From the IMG/VR virus record IMGVR_UViG_3300044972_002389, positions 264,604 through 328,603 of that record: a DNA stretch of 64,000 nt; one strand, written 5' to 3'. The notes beneath the pieces were generated by a model. It was not told the origin of the DNA. It made no database searches and saw only the letters and a program-made list of their open reading frames with translations. Of the stretch, positions 57,335-64,000 are shown in pieces. Both the position numbers and the translations under genes were made by a program. The stretch's first letter is position 1. Every line of letters begins with the position of its first letter.

Positions 57335-57595
57335 ATGCAAGCCAACGAATTTGCCAAAAAGCCACAAAAACCTCAAAAAAAGACCACGCAATCCGTTGTT
57401 GCCAGTCCACCATCATTGGTTGAGAAAAAGTTAAAATTCAAAATCCCTCACCAAATGCGAGAGGTAACACACAATACCTCTCAACCTATGACAGGCGTGT
57501 TGCCTCCTGGTCACTCAGTGAAGCCAGGTAGTGAATTGGAACTGATTAGAGACACTGATCCAGACTTGTGGGCTCGTATATTGAGATGGGATTGA
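57335..57595 (+). CDS. hypothetical protein, first gene of a late operon
   Basis: TAAATA at 57303, SD GAGG. Confidence 0.55.
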   Translation: MQANEFAKKPQKPQKKTTQSVVASPPSLVEKKLKFKIPHQMREVTHNTSQPMTGVLPPGHSVKPGSELELIRDTDPDLWARILRWD

Positions 57596-57597
57596 AA

Positions 57598-60351
57598 ATG
57601 AAAACAAAAATTAGTAAAATTTTACAAAAAGCACTAGTTGAAGCCATAGCCCCAAGGGGTGGGCCCAAGAGCGCTCCTCCCGCCAAGCTAACAGTTAGTA
57701 GTGCCACCTTGGATTCAAGACTGGAGATGATTAACAATGTATTGGACAACATGTATGACCACATTAGTGGTATCCTGCTTGTTGGTCCTACAGGCATTGG
57801 AAAAACATCATTTGTTTATCAATTTAGTGAACTTATGGGCATGAATGCAGTAGTTGTGGAGGCACCGCATGTTAGTGAAGAGCACTTGGTTAACATTCCA
57901 TTTATGGTATATAATCCCATTAACAAAACCAAAAAAGCAGGCACTGACCAACTGACCCCAGTAGAGCCAGCAAGAAAAGCTGCTAAAAGTCCGAACCAAC
58001 CTATAGATATCAAAAAATGGGACGTAGTTTACGGTAAAAGCCATCTTGTAGCTTCCATTGAAGCGTTGAGGCCCGTAAGTGATCAAGAGCTCTTGAACCA
58101 CATGAACTCAAAATCTAGCAATAATACCAAAGCTCTTTGGAAAGGCTTAGGTGGCACCGAAACAACTATACCACCTAGAGTGGCTGAATTGCGTAGACGC
58201 TACAGCAGCATCCTATTCATTGATGAATTTATGCGTCAAGTAACAGGTGGGGTTCGTAATATTCTTCGTGATTTGGTTGTGGACAAGAAGGTTGGTGATA
58301 ATGACTTACCTCCCAACGTGTACTCTATGTATGCCAGCAACTTGAAGGATACTGGATCCCAGGGCACTGTTGAACAAATGCCCAGCTTTTACCAATTCCA
58401 ACAGATTCACTTCCCTACTCCCAGCAAGCAAGATTTTTTCCATTATTTGATTGCTGAATTTGAAAAAGATGGAGTTCATCTCAAGCCAGAAGTGGCAACA
58501 GCATTCTACAAAGCACTAGATGACAAACATATAAGTTATGATGATGCAGCATCAGAAATTCGCACCAGTCCTCGCCGGTGGGAGCAAATTATCAGTTATG
58601 TGAATGCAAGTGTTCCTGTCACTACAAAAGAACAAGCATCCTCTCTATTAGCAAACATAAAAGCTAATTTTGAAGATATTGATAAAGTAAGCAGTCTCTA
58701 TAAACTAGTTGATCAAATTGTACGTAATATTATTTGGGACACAAGTGGCGAGGACTTTGCAGGTGTGAAGGCAAATAGCCCTACCTTATGGCGTGATACA
58801 CTTATGCATCAAGTTGAAACAGCTGAAAAAATGGGCGATCAGAGAGCTTATGTTCCCATTGTTGCAGGTCAGCCTGGTATTGGCAAAACTGCGGAAATGA
58901 CTTCAATAGCTGACAAATTGAACTTAAGGCTTATAAGAATTTCTTGCACAAGTTTACGTCCTGAAGACGTTACTGGTATTCCATTGCCTGATGAAAAAGA
59001 GGGTAAATTTGATGTTAAGTTTGCTGATCCTCCGTTGTATCGAAAGATTATTGATCAAATGGAACAAAAAAAGGAAGCTTTTCTCAATTCACCAAAAATT
59101 TCAGAGGAGAGAAAACAAGAGTGGCTCGGCAAGCCCAAGCAATATTTGTTGTTCTTTGATGAATTCAACCGTCCTGAAGAAGCCACTACTTACAACACAC
59201 TGCGCCGTGTTATTTTGGACAAAAGTTTTACGGATGATATCAAGTTGCCCAAAAATCTAATTGTCGTTGCAGCCATGAATCCAACAGACCTTAAAGTCCA
59301 GCCACTCACAGGTCATATGAAAGATGCGACTGACTATATAGCAACAGCCCCACGTTGGAGCTCACAGAAAGAATTTCATGATACCTCTTTGCTGCGACCA
59401 GACCTAAGTGAGGAAGCATCCACTATTGCCCGGATGTTGGTTCATAACTTTGCTGAAAAATTTAAGCTGGATGTTCCTGACCCTAGCAAAAACATAGATT
59501 CTGAAAGCAGGCAATTCTATATTCAAGTGGGAGATGATGATGTATATATGTCAGGTAGAGAGTATTCAGACATGTTACTGGCCATGCAGCGTGGATTGGA
59601 TCGGGTAGTTAACAAAAAAGATCAGTATGTGCTGCCCAATGGTGAATTTGATAGCGACGGCTATATTGATGCCTTACTGCGCATGGCTAGCACAAAAATC
59701 ATGATGACACTAGACAATGTTTTGCACAAAAATCAAATTGACAGAGAAATGTTTGTTGACCAACTGGATCTTTGGTTGCAAGAACAACGAGAACTATTGA
59801 CCAGCAGTCAAACAACCGGAACCAGTTTGGAAAGCTTGTTTGACAATGCAGTTCGCAATCCCAAGAAGCATCTCAAAGACAATGCAGCATTTATGAATTG
59901 GGTTGATACACAATTTAGCCCAGCTGACTTCACCAATGAGTTCCTAGCTTGGTTAACAAACGTTGCTGCACAAGAGGCCAACAAGTTTGATCTGTTGGTC
60001 AGCAAAACGCATAACAAAAAAGTCATACAAGATGGTGTAGTTCAAATAACTGATGATTTGATCGACAAAGTGAACTTCATTGTTGATGAAATTATCATGG
60101 CAATGAATGTTCACAAGCTCAGTAGCCAAATTGGACAAAGTATGGAAGCTGCATTGAGAAAGTTTTGGACCAGTGTGTTCATTGCTGATATTGAAAGAAT
60201 GGAAGAAGAGGCTAAAGATCTTGCCAAAACTGATAAGGCTGCATCAAAAGCTGCCTTGGCTGCTGTAGAGGGGTATCAAAACACGTTGATGGATTATCAA
60301 CGCAAGGTTGCAGCCAAAGTAAGAAGTTTCAGAAAACCCGCAGGAACATAA
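57598..60351 (+). CDS. tandem double-AAA+ ATPase (MoxR/AAA_5-like)
   Basis: Module 1: GPTGIGKT, ILFIDEF, SPRRWE. Module 2: GQPGIGKT, DVTGIP, FFDEFNR, VAAMNP, SGREY. Confidence 0.85.
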   Translation: MKTKISKILQKALVEAIAPRGGPKSAPPAKLTVSSATLDSRLEMINNVLDNMYDHISGILLVGPTGIGKTSFVYQFSELMGMNAVVVEAPHVSEEHLVNIPFMVYNPINKTKKAGTDQLTPVEPARKAAKSPNQPIDIKKWDVVYGKSHLVASIEALRPVSDQELLNHMNSKSSNNTKALWKGLGGTETTIPPRVAELRRRYSSILFIDEFMRQVTGGVRNILRDLVVDKKVGDNDLPPNVYSMYASNLKDTGSQGTVEQMPSFYQFQQIHFPTPSKQDFFHYLIAEFEKDGVHLKPEVATAFYKALDDKHISYDDAASEIRTSPRRWEQIISYVNASVPVTTKEQASSLLANIKANFEDIDKVSSLYKLVDQIVRNIIWDTSGEDFAGVKANSPTLWRDTLMHQVETAEKMGDQRAYVPIVAGQPGIGKTAEMTSIADKLNLRLIRISCTSLRPEDVTGIPLPDEKEGKFDVKFADPPLYRKIIDQMEQKKEAFLNSPKISEERKQEWLGKPKQYLLFFDEFNRPEEATTYNTLRRVILDKSFTDDIKLPKNLIVVAAMNPTDLKVQPLTGHMKDATDYIATAPRWSSQKEFHDTSLLRPDLSEEASTIARMLVHNFAEKFKLDVPDPSKNIDSESRQFYIQVGDDDVYMSGREYSDMLLAMQRGLDRVVNKKDQYVLPNGEFDSDGYIDALLRMASTKIMMTLDNVLHKNQIDREMFVDQLDLWLQEQRELLTSSQTTGTSLESLFDNAVRNPKKHLKDNAAFMNWVDTQFSPADFTNEFLAWLTNVAAQEANKFDLLVSKTHNKKVIQDGVVQITDDLIDKVNFIVDEIIMAMNVHKLSSQIGQSMEAALRKFWTSVFIADIERMEEEAKDLAKTDKAASKAALAAVEGYQNTLMDYQRKVAAKVRSFRKPAGT

Positions 60352-60369: not shown

Positions 60370-62775
60370 ATGGCATTTTCTGTCAAGAGCAATTTAGCCA
60401 AAACACTTTTGGCGTTGGATACCAAGACCTCAGTAACCCCCAAAACAAGGGTTGCTGAGGCTTGGACTATGCGGGCACGCGAAATGGGCGAAACGCCCTT
60501 CAAAAAATCCACACTTCAAGATCGGCACATACAAGAAGTGTTGCAGCATGCCAGTATGGTTACTGGGGTCCCGCTCCCTGATATTGAGCGAGCCATGCAG
60601 AAAAAAATGGCTGAGATTGAAGAGATCAAAAAGTACAGCCCTATTCTCTATGAAACCATTGCTCATAATGCTGCTGAAAATGCTGTATTTGATTTGGTAA
60701 GCAGTGTGCGAAGTAATGTAATGGATCCGCATCCAAGTTTACTAAAATTTGATGAAATAACTTTCCTCAAACTGGCCCGAATGGTTCAGGCGGAGCACCC
60801 TATGTTTCGCCCATTGAAACAACCTGCTGATCCAATCCGTAGAGTGTGGAAAGTTACTCCAATCTTGGTACCTAGTAACCTGCGTGAATACAAAAAGTAC
60901 AATGGTGTGAACACTGCTTGTGCAACTGCTCAAGGTGACTTTGTATTCAACAAACCGTTCATGCAAAACTTGATGGATTGGGCAGTTATTGAAGGTGTTC
61001 ACCCCCAAGGCAAAAAATATCACAGCAATGGAGGTCCCATTCCTGATGCCTATGTGTATGTGGAATTTTTGATTATGCATGAGTACATGCATTTTGCCTA
61101 TGGCGATTTCAATTATAGCAAACAATTGCCGCAATTCAATCACAAAGTTCACAACTGGGCTTCAGATTTCAGGAGCAATTACGACCTCGTTAAAAACAAC
61201 TTTGCGCAATTGCCTATTGGGTTGTTCAGTGATCACATCAATAGTGATCGGCAAGGCAGCTACACTGACATGGCACAGCTGGTTCACGATGAACTCAAAA
61301 AACTGCCACCACATTTGCAGAAATTGTGGGAAAAAATAGCCAAAATTGATGAAGAACCCAACAAACCCAAAACGCCTAAAAAAACCAGCACTAAACCGCC
61401 ACCGCCTGTGATCAAGGTGCGGTATAGGGCAAGTGAGAGTGATGTTGTAAGGCTCCCAGATGGTACATATGGGCAGGTTACAAAAGTTGATCCGGATGGA
61501 AGTTTTGATACCCGTCCACTAACGCAGGACGAGGCAACACAACTGCTCAATTATCCCAAAGGCTATCGTGTGCGGGCTAATCCACAAATAACAGAAAGCA
61601 AGAGAAAAAGGATTTTGTTGGAAGGCCGTTGGAAGCCTGATGATGTGATTTGGATGAAACCCAAGCGGGACAAACCTACTCCTCCACCTCAACCTCCTGA
61701 GCCCCCATTACCACCTGAACCGGAAGATGATGAGGACGAACCAACACCGCCTCCTGTAATTGACATGGAGGGGGAAGATCCACCACCTGACGAAGATGAT
61801 GAAGGAGAAGGAAGCAGTGGTGGTGAAGAAGGTGAAGACGAGGAAGAGGACGGTAAGGAAGGCAAAGGCAAAGACGAAAAAGAGAAAGAAAAGAAAAAAG
61901 AAAAAGTCTTTGGCCCGTCTCCAGATGAAATAGCTGAAAAACTCAAGGACCAGATCAAGGATTCTAACATTACACCTCGGCCAGGGACTCCTAGTGGTAG
62001 AGACGATCCCCGGATGGGTCCTGGCCAAGCTGGCAGTCCTGGTGGCGCAGGGGCATTGCCTTTGGGTTCTGCCAAAAAGCGTGTTGAAGACATCAAGCCG
62101 CATATGAATTGGAAACAGTTGATCAAGTTGATGGTGTCCAGTAGTCAATTGGCAACAGACACATCGTACACCAAGCCCAGCAGGAGAAACATCACAGGTG
62201 CGCCCATAGCTGCCAAGTTAGGGGCTGCTGCAATCAAACCTGGTCAAGTCAAGCGACCTGTTCCCATCAACAAAGTGTTGCTTGCATTCGACACATCAGG
62301 TAGCATGTGGGGGTTTGTACCTACTGCCTTGAAAGAGGCTGAAATGCTCTTGAAGCAGTTGGGCAAAGTTGATTATCCTTTTGGTGTTATGTTCTGGGCT
62401 GGTAGTCACGAAAGCTTTGTGGTAAACCAAGGACAAGATTTTTATGCTCCTGTTGACAACTTGCGCCAACTTAATGAACCTGTAGACAAAAGCAAACAAA
62501 TCAAGGGCTGGAACAATGTTTTGAAACAGCATGGCACAGGTGGCACAATGTTTACACCTGCAATGGTAAGCGAGCTATCTGCTGCTGCCTCAGATGGTTT
62601 CAATATTTTGATATTCTCAGATACTGACCTATTGGACAATCAAAATTGGCTCAACTTCCTGAAATTGTGGAAAGCACACAAAGCCAATGTGTTTTGTGTG
62701 TTCAACGATGAACCAAGTTGGCGTAAGGCAGTGAAAAAAGTGGGACAAAATACACCACATTTTACTCATTTGTAA
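60370..62775 (+). CDS. HExxH metallopeptidase-like + VWA domain protein (DUF2201-like)
   Basis: TACAT...F..N..F, MHEYMH, N.ASD; Pro/acidic linker; MIDAS DTSGSM, GGT, FSD. Confidence 0.82.
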   Translation: MAFSVKSNLAKTLLALDTKTSVTPKTRVAEAWTMRAREMGETPFKKSTLQDRHIQEVLQHASMVTGVPLPDIERAMQKKMAEIEEIKKYSPILYETIAHNAAENAVFDLVSSVRSNVMDPHPSLLKFDEITFLKLARMVQAEHPMFRPLKQPADPIRRVWKVTPILVPSNLREYKKYNGVNTACATAQGDFVFNKPFMQNLMDWAVIEGVHPQGKKYHSNGGPIPDAYVYVEFLIMHEYMHFAYGDFNYSKQLPQFNHKVHNWASDFRSNYDLVKNNFAQLPIGLFSDHINSDRQGSYTDMAQLVHDELKKLPPHLQKLWEKIAKIDEEPNKPKTPKKTSTKPPPPVIKVRYRASESDVVRLPDGTYGQVTKVDPDGSFDTRPLTQDEATQLLNYPKGYRVRANPQITESKRKRILLEGRWKPDDVIWMKPKRDKPTPPPQPPEPPLPPEPEDDEDEPTPPPVIDMEGEDPPPDEDDEGEGSSGGEEGEDEEEDGKEGKGKDEKEKEKKKEKVFGPSPDEIAEKLKDQIKDSNITPRPGTPSGRDDPRMGPGQAGSPGGAGALPLGSAKKRVEDIKPHMNWKQLIKLMVSSSQLATDTSYTKPSRRNITGAPIAAKLGAAAIKPGQVKRPVPINKVLLAFDTSGSMWGFVPTALKEAEMLLKQLGKVDYPFGVMFWAGSHESFVVNQGQDFYAPVDNLRQLNEPVDKSKQIKGWNNVLKQHGTGGTMFTPAMVSELSAAASDGFNILIFSDTDLLDNQNWLNFLKLWKAHKANVFCVFNDEPSWRKAVKKVGQNTPHFTHL

Positions 62776-62777
62776 TC

Positions 62778-63413
62778 ATGCAGGCAGAGATTCATCCGCT
62801 AGACTGGGTTTACAAAAATTTTGATGTGCCTAGCACAACCAAAATCTCCTTGAGTCCCAGTAATGAGATAGTTGTTGACGGTGATATTGTAGCTTGGGGA
62901 GTAGGGCAATCCTTTCCCCAGCTACCTGTGCGTTTCAAAAAAGTCACAGGCGTCTGCGGCTTTGCCAGCATGGGGCTTGAATCTCTCTTAGGTGCGCCAC
63001 AAGAGTGCGGGTCCTTTTATTGCTCTGGTAACGAACTAGAGTCTCTTGAACATGGACCAACAACGATTGTAGGCGGCGAATACAATTGCTCTTATAATCG
63101 TTTGAGTGATTTAACAGGCCTGCCCACTGAAATTCCAGGCAGGCTCAGCTGCCATGGTAACTGGTTAACCTCCTTACAAGGGTTTCCTAACCACGTTGGA
63201 ACAAGTGTTGACTTAACATGGCACAATAGTTTGCCTTTGTTGAGAACTTTGGTTGCTAAGGAAGTTGGGTTCTCAAACACAGGTGACACTTTCGAGAAGG
63301 CTTACCAGGTAGCCAAGATATTGAACAAATACGCAGGACAAGGCAAACGTGCCATGTTTGATTGCCAAAAAGACTTGGAAGATGCAGGATTTGAAGGAAA
63401 TGCAAGATGGTAG
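62778..63413 (+). CDS. LRR-like repeat protein, array member 1
   Basis: L.SL.G.P....G...C..N repeats; C-terminal tail shared with the next gene. Confidence 0.8.
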   Translation: MQAEIHPLDWVYKNFDVPSTTKISLSPSNEIVVDGDIVAWGVGQSFPQLPVRFKKVTGVCGFASMGLESLLGAPQECGSFYCSGNELESLEHGPTTIVGGEYNCSYNRLSDLTGLPTEIPGRLSCHGNWLTSLQGFPNHVGTSVDLTWHNSLPLLRTLVAKEVGFSNTGDTFEKAYQVAKILNKYAGQGKRAMFDCQKDLEDAGFEGNARW

Positions 63414-63958
63414 ACAAAAATGAAATAATGGAGTTGTTTGAAAAATATTTTAAAACAGCTGATGAGATAACCATTGACGATAAGGGATTGGTCTCTTGTA
63501 CTGGAGATGTAGGTCTCCAACCAGAACTGAAGCACGAGAGGTTACCTGTGTCTTTTGATATGGTTGATGGTGATTTCTGGTGCCACAACAACCAGCTCAC
63601 AACACTTGAAGGTGCACCCACTTCAGTTGGTGGTGATTTCGGGTGCTACCACAACCAGCTCACAACACTTGAAGGTGCACCCACTTCAGTTGGTGGTGAT
63701 TTCAGGTGCTACCACAACCAGCTCACCTCACTTGAAGGCATGCCAGCCGTAGAAGGAACCTTGTGGCTCTCCTACAGCCCCACGTTGCCACTGCTTCGTT
63801 GTTTGCTCGCAAAAGAGATTCAACTGTATCCCAAAGATGGGAAGCACAAAACAGCTGAAAAAATTCTCAATCGATACGCAGGGCAAGGCAAACGAGCAAT
63901 GTTTGACTGCCAAAAAGACTTGGAAGATGCAGGCTTTGAAGGAAATGCCAGATGGTAG
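63407..63958 (+). CDS. LRR-like repeat protein, array member 2
   Basis: 21-aa repeats GDFxCxxNQLTTLEGAPTSVG; same C-terminal tail. Confidence 0.85.
   Translation: MVDKNEIMELFEKYFKTADEITIDDKGLVSCTGDVGLQPELKHERLPVSFDMVDGDFWCHNNQLTTLEGAPTSVGGDFGCYHNQLTTLEGAPTSVGGDFRCYHNQLTSLEGMPAVEGTLWLSYSPTLPLLRCLLAKEIQLYPKDGKHKTAEKILNRYAGQGKRAMFDCQKDLEDAGFEGNARW
63569..63739 (+). repeat. 63-bp near-perfect tandem repeat (about 2.7 copies) encoding LRR-like units
   Basis: Units start at 63569, 63632 and 63695. Confidence 0.9.
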
Positions 63959-64000
63959 ACAAAAAAGAAGTAATGGCTTTGTTGGAAAAATATTTCAAAA
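63952..64000 (+). CDS. LRR-like array member 3 (5' end only, truncated by the window)
   Basis: MVDKKEVMALLEKYFK, paralogous to member 2's MVDKNEIMELFEKYFK; same AGATGGTAG overlap. Confidence 0.8.
   Translation, partial: MVDKKEVMALLEKYFK

Follow-up and report, generated by a model that had tools for sequence, protein, structure and literature searches.

We found that a large family of small phage LRR proteins, encoded in tandem overlapping arrays, ends in a common C-terminal tail that is under purifying selection at the protein level and is not kept alike by gene conversion. The type of tail follows the phage lineage, whereas the LRR bodies in front of it do not. Our results are best explained by a folded cap with a lineage-specific docking face, a partner in the form of an AAA/VWA pair, a coupled array, and bodies that are swapped; we put the probability of this combined reading at roughly 45%.

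The window (the whole stretch of 64,000 nucleotides that was analysed) belongs to the 328-kb genome of a lake jumbo phage and contains the beginning of one such array, and the contig ends inside it. There are two complete tail copies in this assembly, plus a stub of 16 codons. The features are as follows.

57568..60351, + strand: double AAA+ ATPase, 927 aa, with two P-loop modules, MoxR/dynein-related; first gene of the apparent operon
60370..62775, + strand: HExxH/VWA protein, 801 aa; N-terminal DUF2201_N metallopeptidase-like domain and C-terminal VWA domain with MIDAS
62778..63413, + strand: LRR paralogue 1, 211 aa; first array member, with its own non-overlapping ATG start
63330..63413, + strand: tail copy 1, 27 codons (63330-63410) and TAG; SD-like GAAGGA at 63393-63398, next ATG at 63407-63409
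63407..63958, + strand: LRR paralogue 2, 183 aa; N-terminal helix, 21-residue LRR units and a predicted two-helix C-terminal cap
63563..63738, + strand: 63-nt tandem repeat, 2.8 copies with 93% match, encoding three near-identical 21-residue LRR units (NQLTTLEGAPTSVGGDFxCYH)
63875..63958, + strand: tail copy 2, 27 codons (63875-63955) and TAG; SD-like GAAGGA at 63938-63943, next ATG at 63952-63954
63952..64000, + strand: stub of a third paralogue, first 16 codons (MVDKKEVMALLEKYFK), cut by the contig end

The stop codon of the VWA gene and the start of the first LRR gene are 2 nt apart. The sequence at the start of the stub, MVDKKEVMALLEKYFK, recurs after tails in L003, L007, L008 and L014.

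The translations of both complete paralogues end in YAGQGKRAMFDCQKDLEDAGFEGNARW. Read codon by codon, the DNA of the two tail copies differed by six synonymous and no replacement changes (GGA/GGG, CGT/CGA, GCC/GCA, GAT/GAC, GGA/GGC and GCA/GCC). With approximately 15 synonymous and 66 non-synonymous sites, the probability that all six changes would be synonymous by chance is ~4e-5. The two proteins could be aligned only across residues 78-211 of paralogue 1, where they are 54% identical (~42% when the tail is left out), and at this ~42% background the probability of 27 consecutive identities is ~6e-8. Both junctions read AGATGGTAGACAAAAA, with the ATG of the next gene inside AGA-TGG-TAG (starts at 63407 and 63952) and GAAGGA (codons E-G) 8 nt upstream of it. 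The original prediction had described the shared tail, its six silent differences and the identical junctions, and rereading the ORFs and the DNA reproduced them exactly. It had also called the tail invariant. This holds for the window pair, but in related arrays conservation is ~90% among tails of one type, and different phage lineages have different tails.

To compare tail and body, as had been proposed, we computed pN and pS for 24 genes from 4 arrays (276 gene pairs). Tails had a pS of 0.67 and a pN of 0.09 (0.089), compared to 0.77 and 0.49 for the bodies. Constraint on the tail also greatly exceeded that on the N-terminal cap or on the LRR scaffold. These values bear out the earlier proposal that purifying selection acts on the tail protein. 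Because the silent sites of the tail are near saturation, tail DNA is not being homogenised, and we reject gene conversion as the cause of tail identity. More broadly, an effect at the level of DNA (recent gene conversion, or a recombination or RNA element) might keep the 81 nt alike. Such an effect would fit the low pS of the 3' ends within the L018 array (0.14-0.19, vs 0.40-0.43 for the bodies), the pS of the window-pair tails (0.40, below the family mean), and the breaking of assemblies at the tail. However, it does not account for a nearly saturated pS alongside an almost frozen pN, nor for window differences that are all synonymous. In the neighbouring genes L003_1 and L003_2, the 5' parts are near-identical (pS 0.04-0.08), but the tails have a pS of 0.66 with a pN of 0.04. 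A DNA-level effect is largely refuted by these silent sites, and we consider it exceedingly improbable.

The last seven codons of the tail (F-E-G-N-A-R-W-stop) also encode an SD and the overlapping start of the next gene. Among the internal junctions of seven arrays, an overlapping ATG or GTG was present in 35/36 and an SD-like motif in 35/36. Of six array-terminal genes, four had kept the start and three the SD. In L003 and L013, the array ends with a gene that has CGT-TGG or CGC-TGG and has lost both the ATG and the SD, yet retains the NARW ending. In more distant lineages the overlapping ATG sits in other tail codons (N-A in L026, A-W in L027). These signals are in line with the predicted translational coupling, by which array members would be coupled through an SD and start within the tail codons of the gene upstream. 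We rejected the overlap as the sole cause of tail conservation: it covers at most the last seven codons, and the terminal genes of L003 and L013 keep NARW without start or SD.

We found that the family is large and confined to tailed phages that have not been cultured, most of them freshwater jumbo phages. A search with a profile of the tail returned 782 clusters at 50% identity, all from phages, and the family recurs in lake viromes. Tail-bearing members are LRR proteins of 150-290 aa whose overlapping genes form tandem arrays with as many as nine members. All genuine matches lie at the extreme C-terminus of proteins with this architecture, which was present in 142/144 of the newly returned best matches inspected. 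Two repeat proteins longer than 1300 aa (P0244 and P0249) were rejected as tail carriers; they match only profile positions 3-17 through repeated ILxxYKGKE motifs and are unrelated. The profile search, run as the original prediction had suggested to see which domains carry the tail, found it on no other domain among the best matches inspected, and the LRR family alone carries it. A portable docking or degron tag fused to unrelated domains was rejected on the same grounds.

At E<=1e-3, paralogue 2 had 1918 homologues. No cellular relatives turned up in two scans of 185,579 species genomes, and matches in cultured phages were limited to the repeat region, none reaching the tail. Neither paralogue had an informative match in Pfam or PHROGs (Pfam LRR_4 scored 13.2 bits on paralogue 1, below the cut-off of 27, and paralogue 2 had no LRR match), and BFVD contained only unnamed viral paralogues. 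In the literature searched we found no description of the family and nothing specific on phage LRR arrays or on DUF2201/MoxR in phages. The family has no Pfam or PHROG annotation and no member from a cultured phage.

The bodies are predicted to form a curved LRR solenoid. They contain 21-residue tandem units (NQLTTLEGAPTSVGGDFxCxx), with N83, L85, L88, N104, L106 and L109 near-invariant. An AF2 model of paralogue 2 (pLDDT 97, pTM 0.91) has helices at residues 148-157 and 161-174 and is confident up to the C-terminus; the solenoid is predicted to be monomeric, without fibre or trimerisation modules. Structural alignment (VIA-align) gave Z scores of 8-9, which are middling for this tool, to the LRR domains of IpaH7.8, FLRT3, SDS22 and U2A'. 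Foldseek found no significant match in the PDB, only generic LRR rows (E of at least 0.1, SspH1 in the top row). Like the LRRcap of SDS22, U2A' and dynein light chain 1, the modelled tail places helices after the last LRR, and the alignments to U2A' and dynein LC1 run through these helices to model residues 176-182. Unlike those proteins, the tail has no sequence similarity to an LRRcap, and the LRR proteins matched by its profile all belong to this phage family.

In the model, the tail is no loose tag but a two-helix C-terminal subdomain, predicted with confidence, that caps the LRR. The 27 residues would form the last helix and the C-terminal strand of this cap, which closes a small solenoid and may be held together by universal core residues (G159, G161, C168, L172, G176, N180, A181 and W183). 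The original idea of a constant tag is modified accordingly: the tail is constant, but it appears as a folded cap subdomain on a single architecture and not as a portable tag, and its docking or packaging role stays putative.

A second set of residues (K162, A164, F166, D167, Q169, K170, E173 and D174) does not vary inside a phage lineage but changes from one lineage to another. For the charged members of this set (K162, D167, K170, E173 and D174), conservation is 77-100% among tails of one type and 0-32% across types. Judged from helical periodicity rather than coordinates, we infer that the type-specific residues are exposed on the outer face of the helix, which may be a lineage-specific constant region. 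Tail type T1 is found in the window, G004, L003, L008 and L013, T2 in L018, T4 in L020, and a fourth type in L026; arrays of up to nine genes have one tail in common.

The bodies, in contrast, interleave across lineages. On the body tree, array labels require 20 changes, and AU tests rejected a single clade for the bodies of L018 (p 0.0105) and of L020 (p 0.001). Between the second window paralogue and L018_7, pS was 0.28 in the N-terminus, 0.18 in the repeats, 0.44 in the pre-tail block and 1.02 in the tail; for backbone genes of the window and L018 genomes it was 0.73-0.79 (Fisher p 6e-9). Comparing paralogue 1 to its G004 ortholog, 1/175 body residues (residues 10-184) and 5/27 tail residues differ. 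Because the bodies are interleaved and, by their silent sites, much younger than backbone genes or tails, we conclude that body cassettes have been exchanged onto resident tails. The constant-region/variable-region design that had been suggested is borne out by arrays with a single tail whose type tracks lineage. The tail had also been proposed as a homology block for recombination. Recombination does separate bodies from tails, but the breakpoints are upstream of the tail, within either the repeats or the pre-tail block. Recombination there would copy or import body cassettes, also from co-occurring phages, onto resident tails. Exchange between phages whose backbones are saturated at silent sites gives a clean case from nature of modular evolution with constant and variable parts. 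Upstream crossovers alone could give lineage-specific tails, a possibility that counts against the docking reading.

Our results might also indicate that the tail is only a structural C-cap, which shields the hydrophobic end of the solenoid and is conserved for folding and for its overlapping translation signals, with no dedicated partner. The very confident predicted fold up to the last residues, the alignments to LRRcap-bearing proteins through the tail helices, the restriction of the tail to one LRR family and the SD and start in its last codons are all consistent with this. Complex prediction with the VWA domains and paralogue 2 likewise gave no support for a partner (score 0.00, a value that the tool reads neither way). 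However, folding alone does not predict charged outer-face positions that are conserved within types and not between them, or a tail so much more constrained than the other cap and the scaffold. In addition, terminal genes without a downstream overlap retain the tail, and imported bodies end up on resident tails. We regard a purely structural cap as possible but doubtful. Alternatively, tails might bind each other, so that mixed oligomers of paralogues need mutually compatible tails in each genome. Tail-tail binding would explain uniformity within genomes and divergence between lineages without an external partner, and translational coupling would deliver the subunits together, but a single-copy member downstream of an AAA-VWA pair (L029) keeps its tail. 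We think this highly unlikely.

We favour a docking face, and the genes upstream of the array suggest a partner for it. The ATPase matches Pfam AAA, AAA_5 and AAA_3 at residues 431-580, has its second P-loop at residues 55-110, and matches phrog_1297 (ATPase, E 2e-36). In the HExxH/VWA protein there is a linker of ~230 aa that is rich in P/E/D/K. An alignment of 63 VWA-protein sequences showed H237, E238, H241, D641, S643, G644, S645 and T726 to be invariant, and the G004 homologue is 74% identical. Homologues of the ATPase lie upstream of the VWA gene in L018, G004, L026, L027, L029, L030, L028 and L031; the AAA-VWA adjacency, a MoxR-VWA arrangement with MIDAS, is conserved in 9/9 lineages examined. 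In 7/9 (the window, G004, L018, L026, L027, L029 and L030) a tail-bearing LRR gene follows directly downstream, across VWA identities of ~33% to 74%. The pair is not a universal neighbour of the arrays. Arrays in G001, G002, G003 and L020 lie elsewhere, and those of G001, G002 and G003 carry T1 tails away from any AAA/VWA pair, which counts against this partner. In G001 (309 kb, 76% complete) we found only a distant DUF2201 protein of 420 aa and detected no ATPase homologue.

The gene context also bears on whether the tail could be a virion anchor or packaging signal, with the array encoding interchangeable host-binding or ejected proteins. Phage receptor-binding proteins classically pair a lineage-resident anchor with binding domains that are swapped horizontally, a pattern matched here, and in L027 and L028 the AAA-VWA pair adjoins baseplate, portal, neck and sheath genes. 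However, the arrays of the window, L018 and L026 sit among topoisomerase, RNR, phosphoesterase and Hsp70 genes and not among structural genes, and the products are small, predicted-monomeric solenoids of 150-290 aa that lack fibre or trimerisation modules. Phage Goslar has 10 paralogues with a constant DUF7941 module in common (bioRxiv 10.64898/2026.04.21.720040). Like these and the conserved anchors of multi-receptor-binding-protein phages, the family combines a constant module across many jumbo-phage paralogues with variable domains, including LRRs, and horizontal exchange. In contrast to DUF7941, the constant part here is C-terminal and ~27-40 residues long, the proteins are small, and their genes lie outside any structural module in this genome. 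We consider a virion anchor quite unlikely.

According to the docking reading, the tail face would connect each paralogue to a single common partner while the variable LRR body binds a different target, and the array would be a set of interchangeable recognition adaptors. The likeliest partner is the apparently co-transcribed pair of double AAA+ ATPase and HExxH-peptidase/VWA (MIDAS) protein. By analogy to MoxR-VWA systems, the tail is probably a shared handle for this neighbouring machine. We infer the binding of the constant face to a partner, the identity of that partner, and what the bodies bind.

In MoxR-VWA systems, the VWA domain is thought to capture a client peptide and the ATPase to remodel the client (PMC7159879), and in the 'ternary' conflict systems of this class the third component is a VMAP, iSTAND, FtsH or beta-propeller protein (Kaur, Burroughs, Iyer, Aravind 2020, PMC7159879). 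The phage loci resemble these systems in their order (a MoxR/AAA_5 ATPase, a MIDAS-intact VWA protein and then a diversifying third component) and in placing variable recognition parts on a conserved module. They differ in their 927-aa ATPase with two AAA modules, in the HExxH DUF2201_N domain at the N-terminus of the VWA protein, in a third component made up of tandem small LRR proteins, for which Pfam gave no match to the four described kinds, and in being phage-encoded. More specifically, the array might be an exchangeable adaptor repertoire for the phage AAA+/VWA-metallopeptidase, in which bodies seize host proteins (for example, a defence factor), the lineage-specific tail delivers them to the MIDAS for ATP-driven remodelling or proteolysis, and co-occurring phages trade bodies but keep their own tail. 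We think this version rather unlikely; if true, it would be a viral constant-region/variable-region counter-defence system.

The short-unit LRR domains of the bacterial IpaH/SspH/YopM effectors offer a further comparison. They are among the best structural matches (IpaH7.8 with Z 9.1, SspH1 in the top Foldseek row) and have short units with an NxLTSL-type motif. In contrast, the phage proteins have 21-residue units, different N- and C-caps, no secretion context, and Foldseek E values of at least 0.1. An effector of the IpaH/SspH type was rejected: there is no NEL E3-ligase domain, and the 183-211 aa proteins end in the 27-residue tail with no further domain.

Poxvirus ankyrin-repeat/PRANC (F-box-like) proteins combine variable repeat bodies with a short, conserved helical module at the C-terminus, through which all paralogues dock on one partner, and the F-box/FNIP or LRR proteins of giant viruses are likewise multigene repeat-protein families with variable binding bodies. 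The phage family shares with the poxvirus one the layout of a repeat multigene family, with bodies that vary and a short helical C-terminus that is conserved; docking is the poxvirus feature. It differs from the poxvirus and giant-virus F-box families in that we saw no sequence or fold relation to F-box and the hosts are bacteria. Unlike the poxvirus module, the constant module here varies between virus lineages and is not matched to one conserved host protein. If docking holds, the arrays would be a bacterial-virus counterpart of the ANK/PRANC and F-box adaptor families, and the widespread, uncharacterised phage AAA+/DUF2201-VWA gene pair would gain a function.

Repeated tails and LRR units also break metagenome assemblies. 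Public lake contigs stop at 63331-63350, and the summed contig depth climbs from 34 to 438 there, in tail copy 1. The same repeats are also a probable source of spurious 'inverted terminal repeat' entries in catalogues of viruses.

We found that the two complete LRR genes at the end of the window overlap and encode proteins with the same 27-residue C-terminus (the tail; the rest of each protein is called the body). They follow two large genes.

57568-60351, ATPase gene upstream of the array; 927 aa, two AAA+ modules
60370-62775, VWA gene, 18 nt after the ATPase gene; 801 aa, with an HExxH motif (invariant), a low-complexity linker and a VWA domain whose MIDAS motif, DxSGS...T, is invariant
62778-63413, + strand, paralogue 1; 211 aa, C-terminus YAGQGKRAMFDCQKDLEDAGFEGNARW
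63407-63958, + strand, paralogue 2; 183 aa, C-terminus YAGQGKRAMFDCQKDLEDAGFEGNARW
63952 onward, third array gene; 16 codons, then the contig end

The paralogues could be aligned only from residue 78 of paralogue 1 and were 54% identical, tail included. As originally predicted, the tails were identical in protein and differed in DNA at exactly 6 positions over 27 codons, all synonymous (P ~4e-5 under neutrality, with ~15 synonymous and ~66 non-synonymous sites). Both junctions had AGA-TGG-TAG with the ATG of the next gene inside it (63407 and 63952), as predicted, and GAAGGA, encoded by Glu-Gly codons, 8 nt upstream of that ATG. A six-frame search found no further tail copies in the assembled genome.

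The tail is under purifying selection, as had been proposed. Across 276 pairs from 24 array genes (tandem overlapping LRR genes), the frequency of silent-site differences (pS) was 0.67 in tails and 0.77 in bodies, and that of replacement-site differences (pN) was 0.089 and 0.49, respectively. Tails with a pS of 0.67 and a pN of only 0.089 are conserved at the level of protein. These values also rule out gene conversion as the cause of tail identity.

The last tail codons double as the ribosome-binding site and start of the next gene, a conclusion that is firmly supported and agrees with the proposed translational coupling. At 35 of 36 internal junctions the Arg/Lys codon's last base and the TG of the Trp codon together made an ATG or GTG, and a purine run resembling an SD occupied the two codons preceding Asn, also at 35 of 36. 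Among six array-terminal genes, the start was kept in four and the SD in three (Fisher p 0.007 for SD). Both signals were lost, and NARW was kept, in the last genes of the L003 (CGT-TGG, FDKNARW) and L013 (CGC-TGG, FEKNARW) arrays. In more distant lineages different tail codons held the overlapping ATG (L026, Asn-Ala; L027, Ala-Trp), indicating that the overlap is an old trait of the family. The first gene after the VWA gene of L018 (L018:8629-9318) had a degenerate tail that lacked the final Trp (...RGISAALELAAELANAGFKENAH), and the gene after it began at a TTG overlapping its stop.

On firm evidence, these genes belong to a phage-only family whose small LRR proteins are encoded in arrays with signals for translational coupling. 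Paralogue 2 had 1918 homologues at E<=1e-3 in a set of 5.8 billion proteins; among the matches listed, the majority ended in YAGQG....F.C...L..AG[FY]..NA[RK]W. A 40-column profile of the tail matched 782 clusters (E<=1e-3) among 1.84 billion representatives. Every real match had the tail at the very C-terminal end of a protein of 150-290 aa, always with one architecture (N-terminal helix, LP.xF motif, LRR units, LPLLR, tail), and this search found the tail on no other domain. Two large proteins, P0244 (1378 aa) and P0249 (1640 aa), matched only profile positions 3-17, many times, through repeated ILERYKGKEE.LF-like motifs, and were treated as unrelated. We found no relatives among 185,579 cellular species genomes and no match spanning the tail in cultured phages. 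About 100 ESM Atlas clusters were nearly all labelled Viruses/Uroviricota and 'hypothetical', and the literature searched held no description of the family.

Arrays in IMG/VR and assembly contigs contained up to 9 genes (L003, L008), with 8 in L018 and 6 in L020, all with overlapping junctions. In G004, a close relative of the window genome (VWA proteins 74% identical), four array members follow the VWA gene and precede a metallophosphoesterase; the same arrangement probably lies past the window end. Two 71,398-bp IMG/VR contigs, G002 and G003 (loci L001-L006, L013, L017), carry an inverted-terminal-repeat label in that database. Since each end is made up of array genes, oriented oppositely at the two ends, the label probably comes from the paralogous arrays rather than from a genome terminus.

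The repeat type is shared by other phage LRR subfamilies (P0044, P0052, P0061, P0069 and similar proteins), which lacked this tail and ended in conserved sequences of their own (...LRAYQGFKGMI, ...YKALATYGNIKGYL, ...MDLLGDLDDIGL). Having a constant end piece may be a general property of phage LRR families. A second tandem family lay outside the window (G000:C1:32713-41497): six adjacent ORFs of ~440-457 aa, with mutual identities of 46-69% and a common C-terminal SSPVREI(S/T)SS(T)TW motif.

The original prediction took the tail to be a tag. Structure prediction argued for an integral cap instead. The AlphaFold2 model of paralogue 2 (72-sequence alignment; pLDDT 97, pTM 0.91) contained a helix (148-157), an AGQG turn, a second helix (161-174) and a C-terminal stretch placed with confidence. 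A Foldseek search of the PDB gave no significant match. A second structural alignment gave Z 8-9 to LRR domains of IpaH7.8, FLRT3, SDS22, dynein LC1 and U2A', and alignments to cap-bearing proteins reached residues 176-182. Based on the confident fold and these alignments, we suggest that the tail is a predicted integral cap and not a free tag, consistent with its absence from other domains. That this two-helix cap is under strong protein-level constraint is firmly supported. In 44 tails from eight arrays, G159, G161, C168, L172, G176, N180, A181 and W183 were universal, and K162, A164, F166, D167, Q169, K170, E173 and D174 were type-specific (74-100% identity within a type, 0-32% between types). 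By helical periodicity, the universal residues would occupy one helix face and the type-specific residues the others.

Tail type tracked phage lineage.

Tail types and the arrays carrying them
T1: GKRAMFDCQKDLEDAGFEGNARW; window, G004, L003, L008, L013
T2: GEAGAFACGAELASAGYKENAKW; L018
T4: GKRGVIRCQKELIAAGFEGNARW; L020
a fourth type: L026

In a tree of bodies with tails removed, arrays were intermixed: array labels needed 20 changes (minimum 5), and one well-supported clade contained window paralogue 2 together with genes of L003 (T1) and of L018 (T2). The AU test rejected a single clade for the bodies of L018 (p 0.0105) and of L020 (p 0.001). The predicted constant-region/variable-region design is thus firmly supported, with the surface type fixed per lineage and bodies shuffled and traded.

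pS by gene region (N-terminus, repeats, pre-tail, tail)
window paralogue 2 and L018_7 (an array gene of L018): 0.28, 0.18, 0.44, 1.02
L003_1 and L003_2 (neighbours): 0.04, 0.08, 0.27, 0.66 (tail pN 0.04)
L018_7 and L018_2 (one array): 0.43, 0.40, 0.14, 0.19

Between the window genome and L018, the ATPase, VWA and topoisomerase genes had a pS of 0.73-0.79, and their products were only 42-64% identical. Comparing paralogue 1 with the G004 ortholog gave differences at 1 of 175 body residues and 5 of 27 tail residues, with a backbone pS of 0.63-0.66. These values indicate that body cassettes are duplicated inside arrays and also pass between divergent phages, and, since body pS was below backbone pS, that exchange came much later than the genome split. 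The cassettes land on resident tails. The tail had been proposed as a homology block for recombination. Bodies do recombine apart from tails, but the breakpoints lay upstream, in the repeats or a conserved pre-tail block.

The constant surface would most likely link all paralogues to one common partner. In G004, L018, L026, L027, L029 and L030, too, the AAA and VWA genes were followed by one or more LRR genes with the tail, which with the window makes 7 of 9 lineages examined (VWA identity ~33% to 74%); in the window, 2 nt separate the VWA stop from the first LRR start. L028 and L031 had no LRR genes, and the arrays of G001, G002/G003 and L020 were located elsewhere; G001 (309 kb, 76% complete) had only a distant 420-aa DUF2201 protein. 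The AAA+/VWA-peptidase pair is the putative partner suggested by this conserved operon-like neighbourhood and by analogy to MoxR-VWA systems, whose VWA domain has been proposed to capture client peptide (PMC7159879). A predicted complex of paralogue 2 with Mg and the two domains of the VWA protein scored 0.00, rated by the tool as neither for nor against binding. Alternatively, the tail might serve purely as a structural cap, might anchor the proteins in the virion (cf. DUF7941, a module of phage Goslar), or paralogues might assemble tail to tail. We found no description of a phage AAA-VWA-LRR module in the literature searched. The family resembles multigene families of repeat proteins in which variable members share a constant docking module, and MoxR-VWA systems, here with a diversifying third component; we regard it as fitting these known designs and not as a new category.

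The VWA-protein linker (window 61400-62050; ~230 P/E/D/K-rich residues between the HExxH and VWA domains) is overlapped by long opposite-strand ORFs that are spurious, caused by compositional bias. After the AAA-VWA-LRR-phosphoesterase block, relatives carry a DUF2828/DUF7788 protein and an Hsp70/DnaK homologue (L018:16731-20738; L026:14934-19195; L010:4808-6658); the counterpart in the window genome lies past the contig end. L027, a 188-kb T4-like relative, had intein/HINT matches in an SMC/Rad50-like gene and a portal gene (L027:1321-3312; L027:19279-19899).

The window is the final 64 kb of one 328,603-bp virus contig. Its genes include those for virion proteins, helicases, topoisomerase II subunits, ribonucleotide reductase and a large terminase, which shares 49% identity with the terminases of two jumbo phages, Sinorhizobium Phosso and Pseudomonas PA5oct. 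The contig start (G000:C1:1-200) lies in a collagen-like repeat with a period of 9 nt (given strand, GGxCCAGTx). With both ends in repeats, the assembly is probably incomplete and not terminally defined. We found the window sequence again in at least 23 lake-water metagenome runs. Public contigs of four of these runs ended at 63331-63350, the start of tail 1. Summed contig depth (>=90% identity) climbed from 34 to 438 across tail 1 and the junction, dropped to 32 at the unique N-terminus of paralogue 2, and climbed again at the LRR units and at tail 2. The sampled lakes therefore contain many times more near-identical tail DNA than adjoining unique DNA, and this accounts for the assembly ending inside the array. 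Past 63415, loose ends agreed with next-gene starts of other array-bearing phages, indicating that several such phages were in the same samples.
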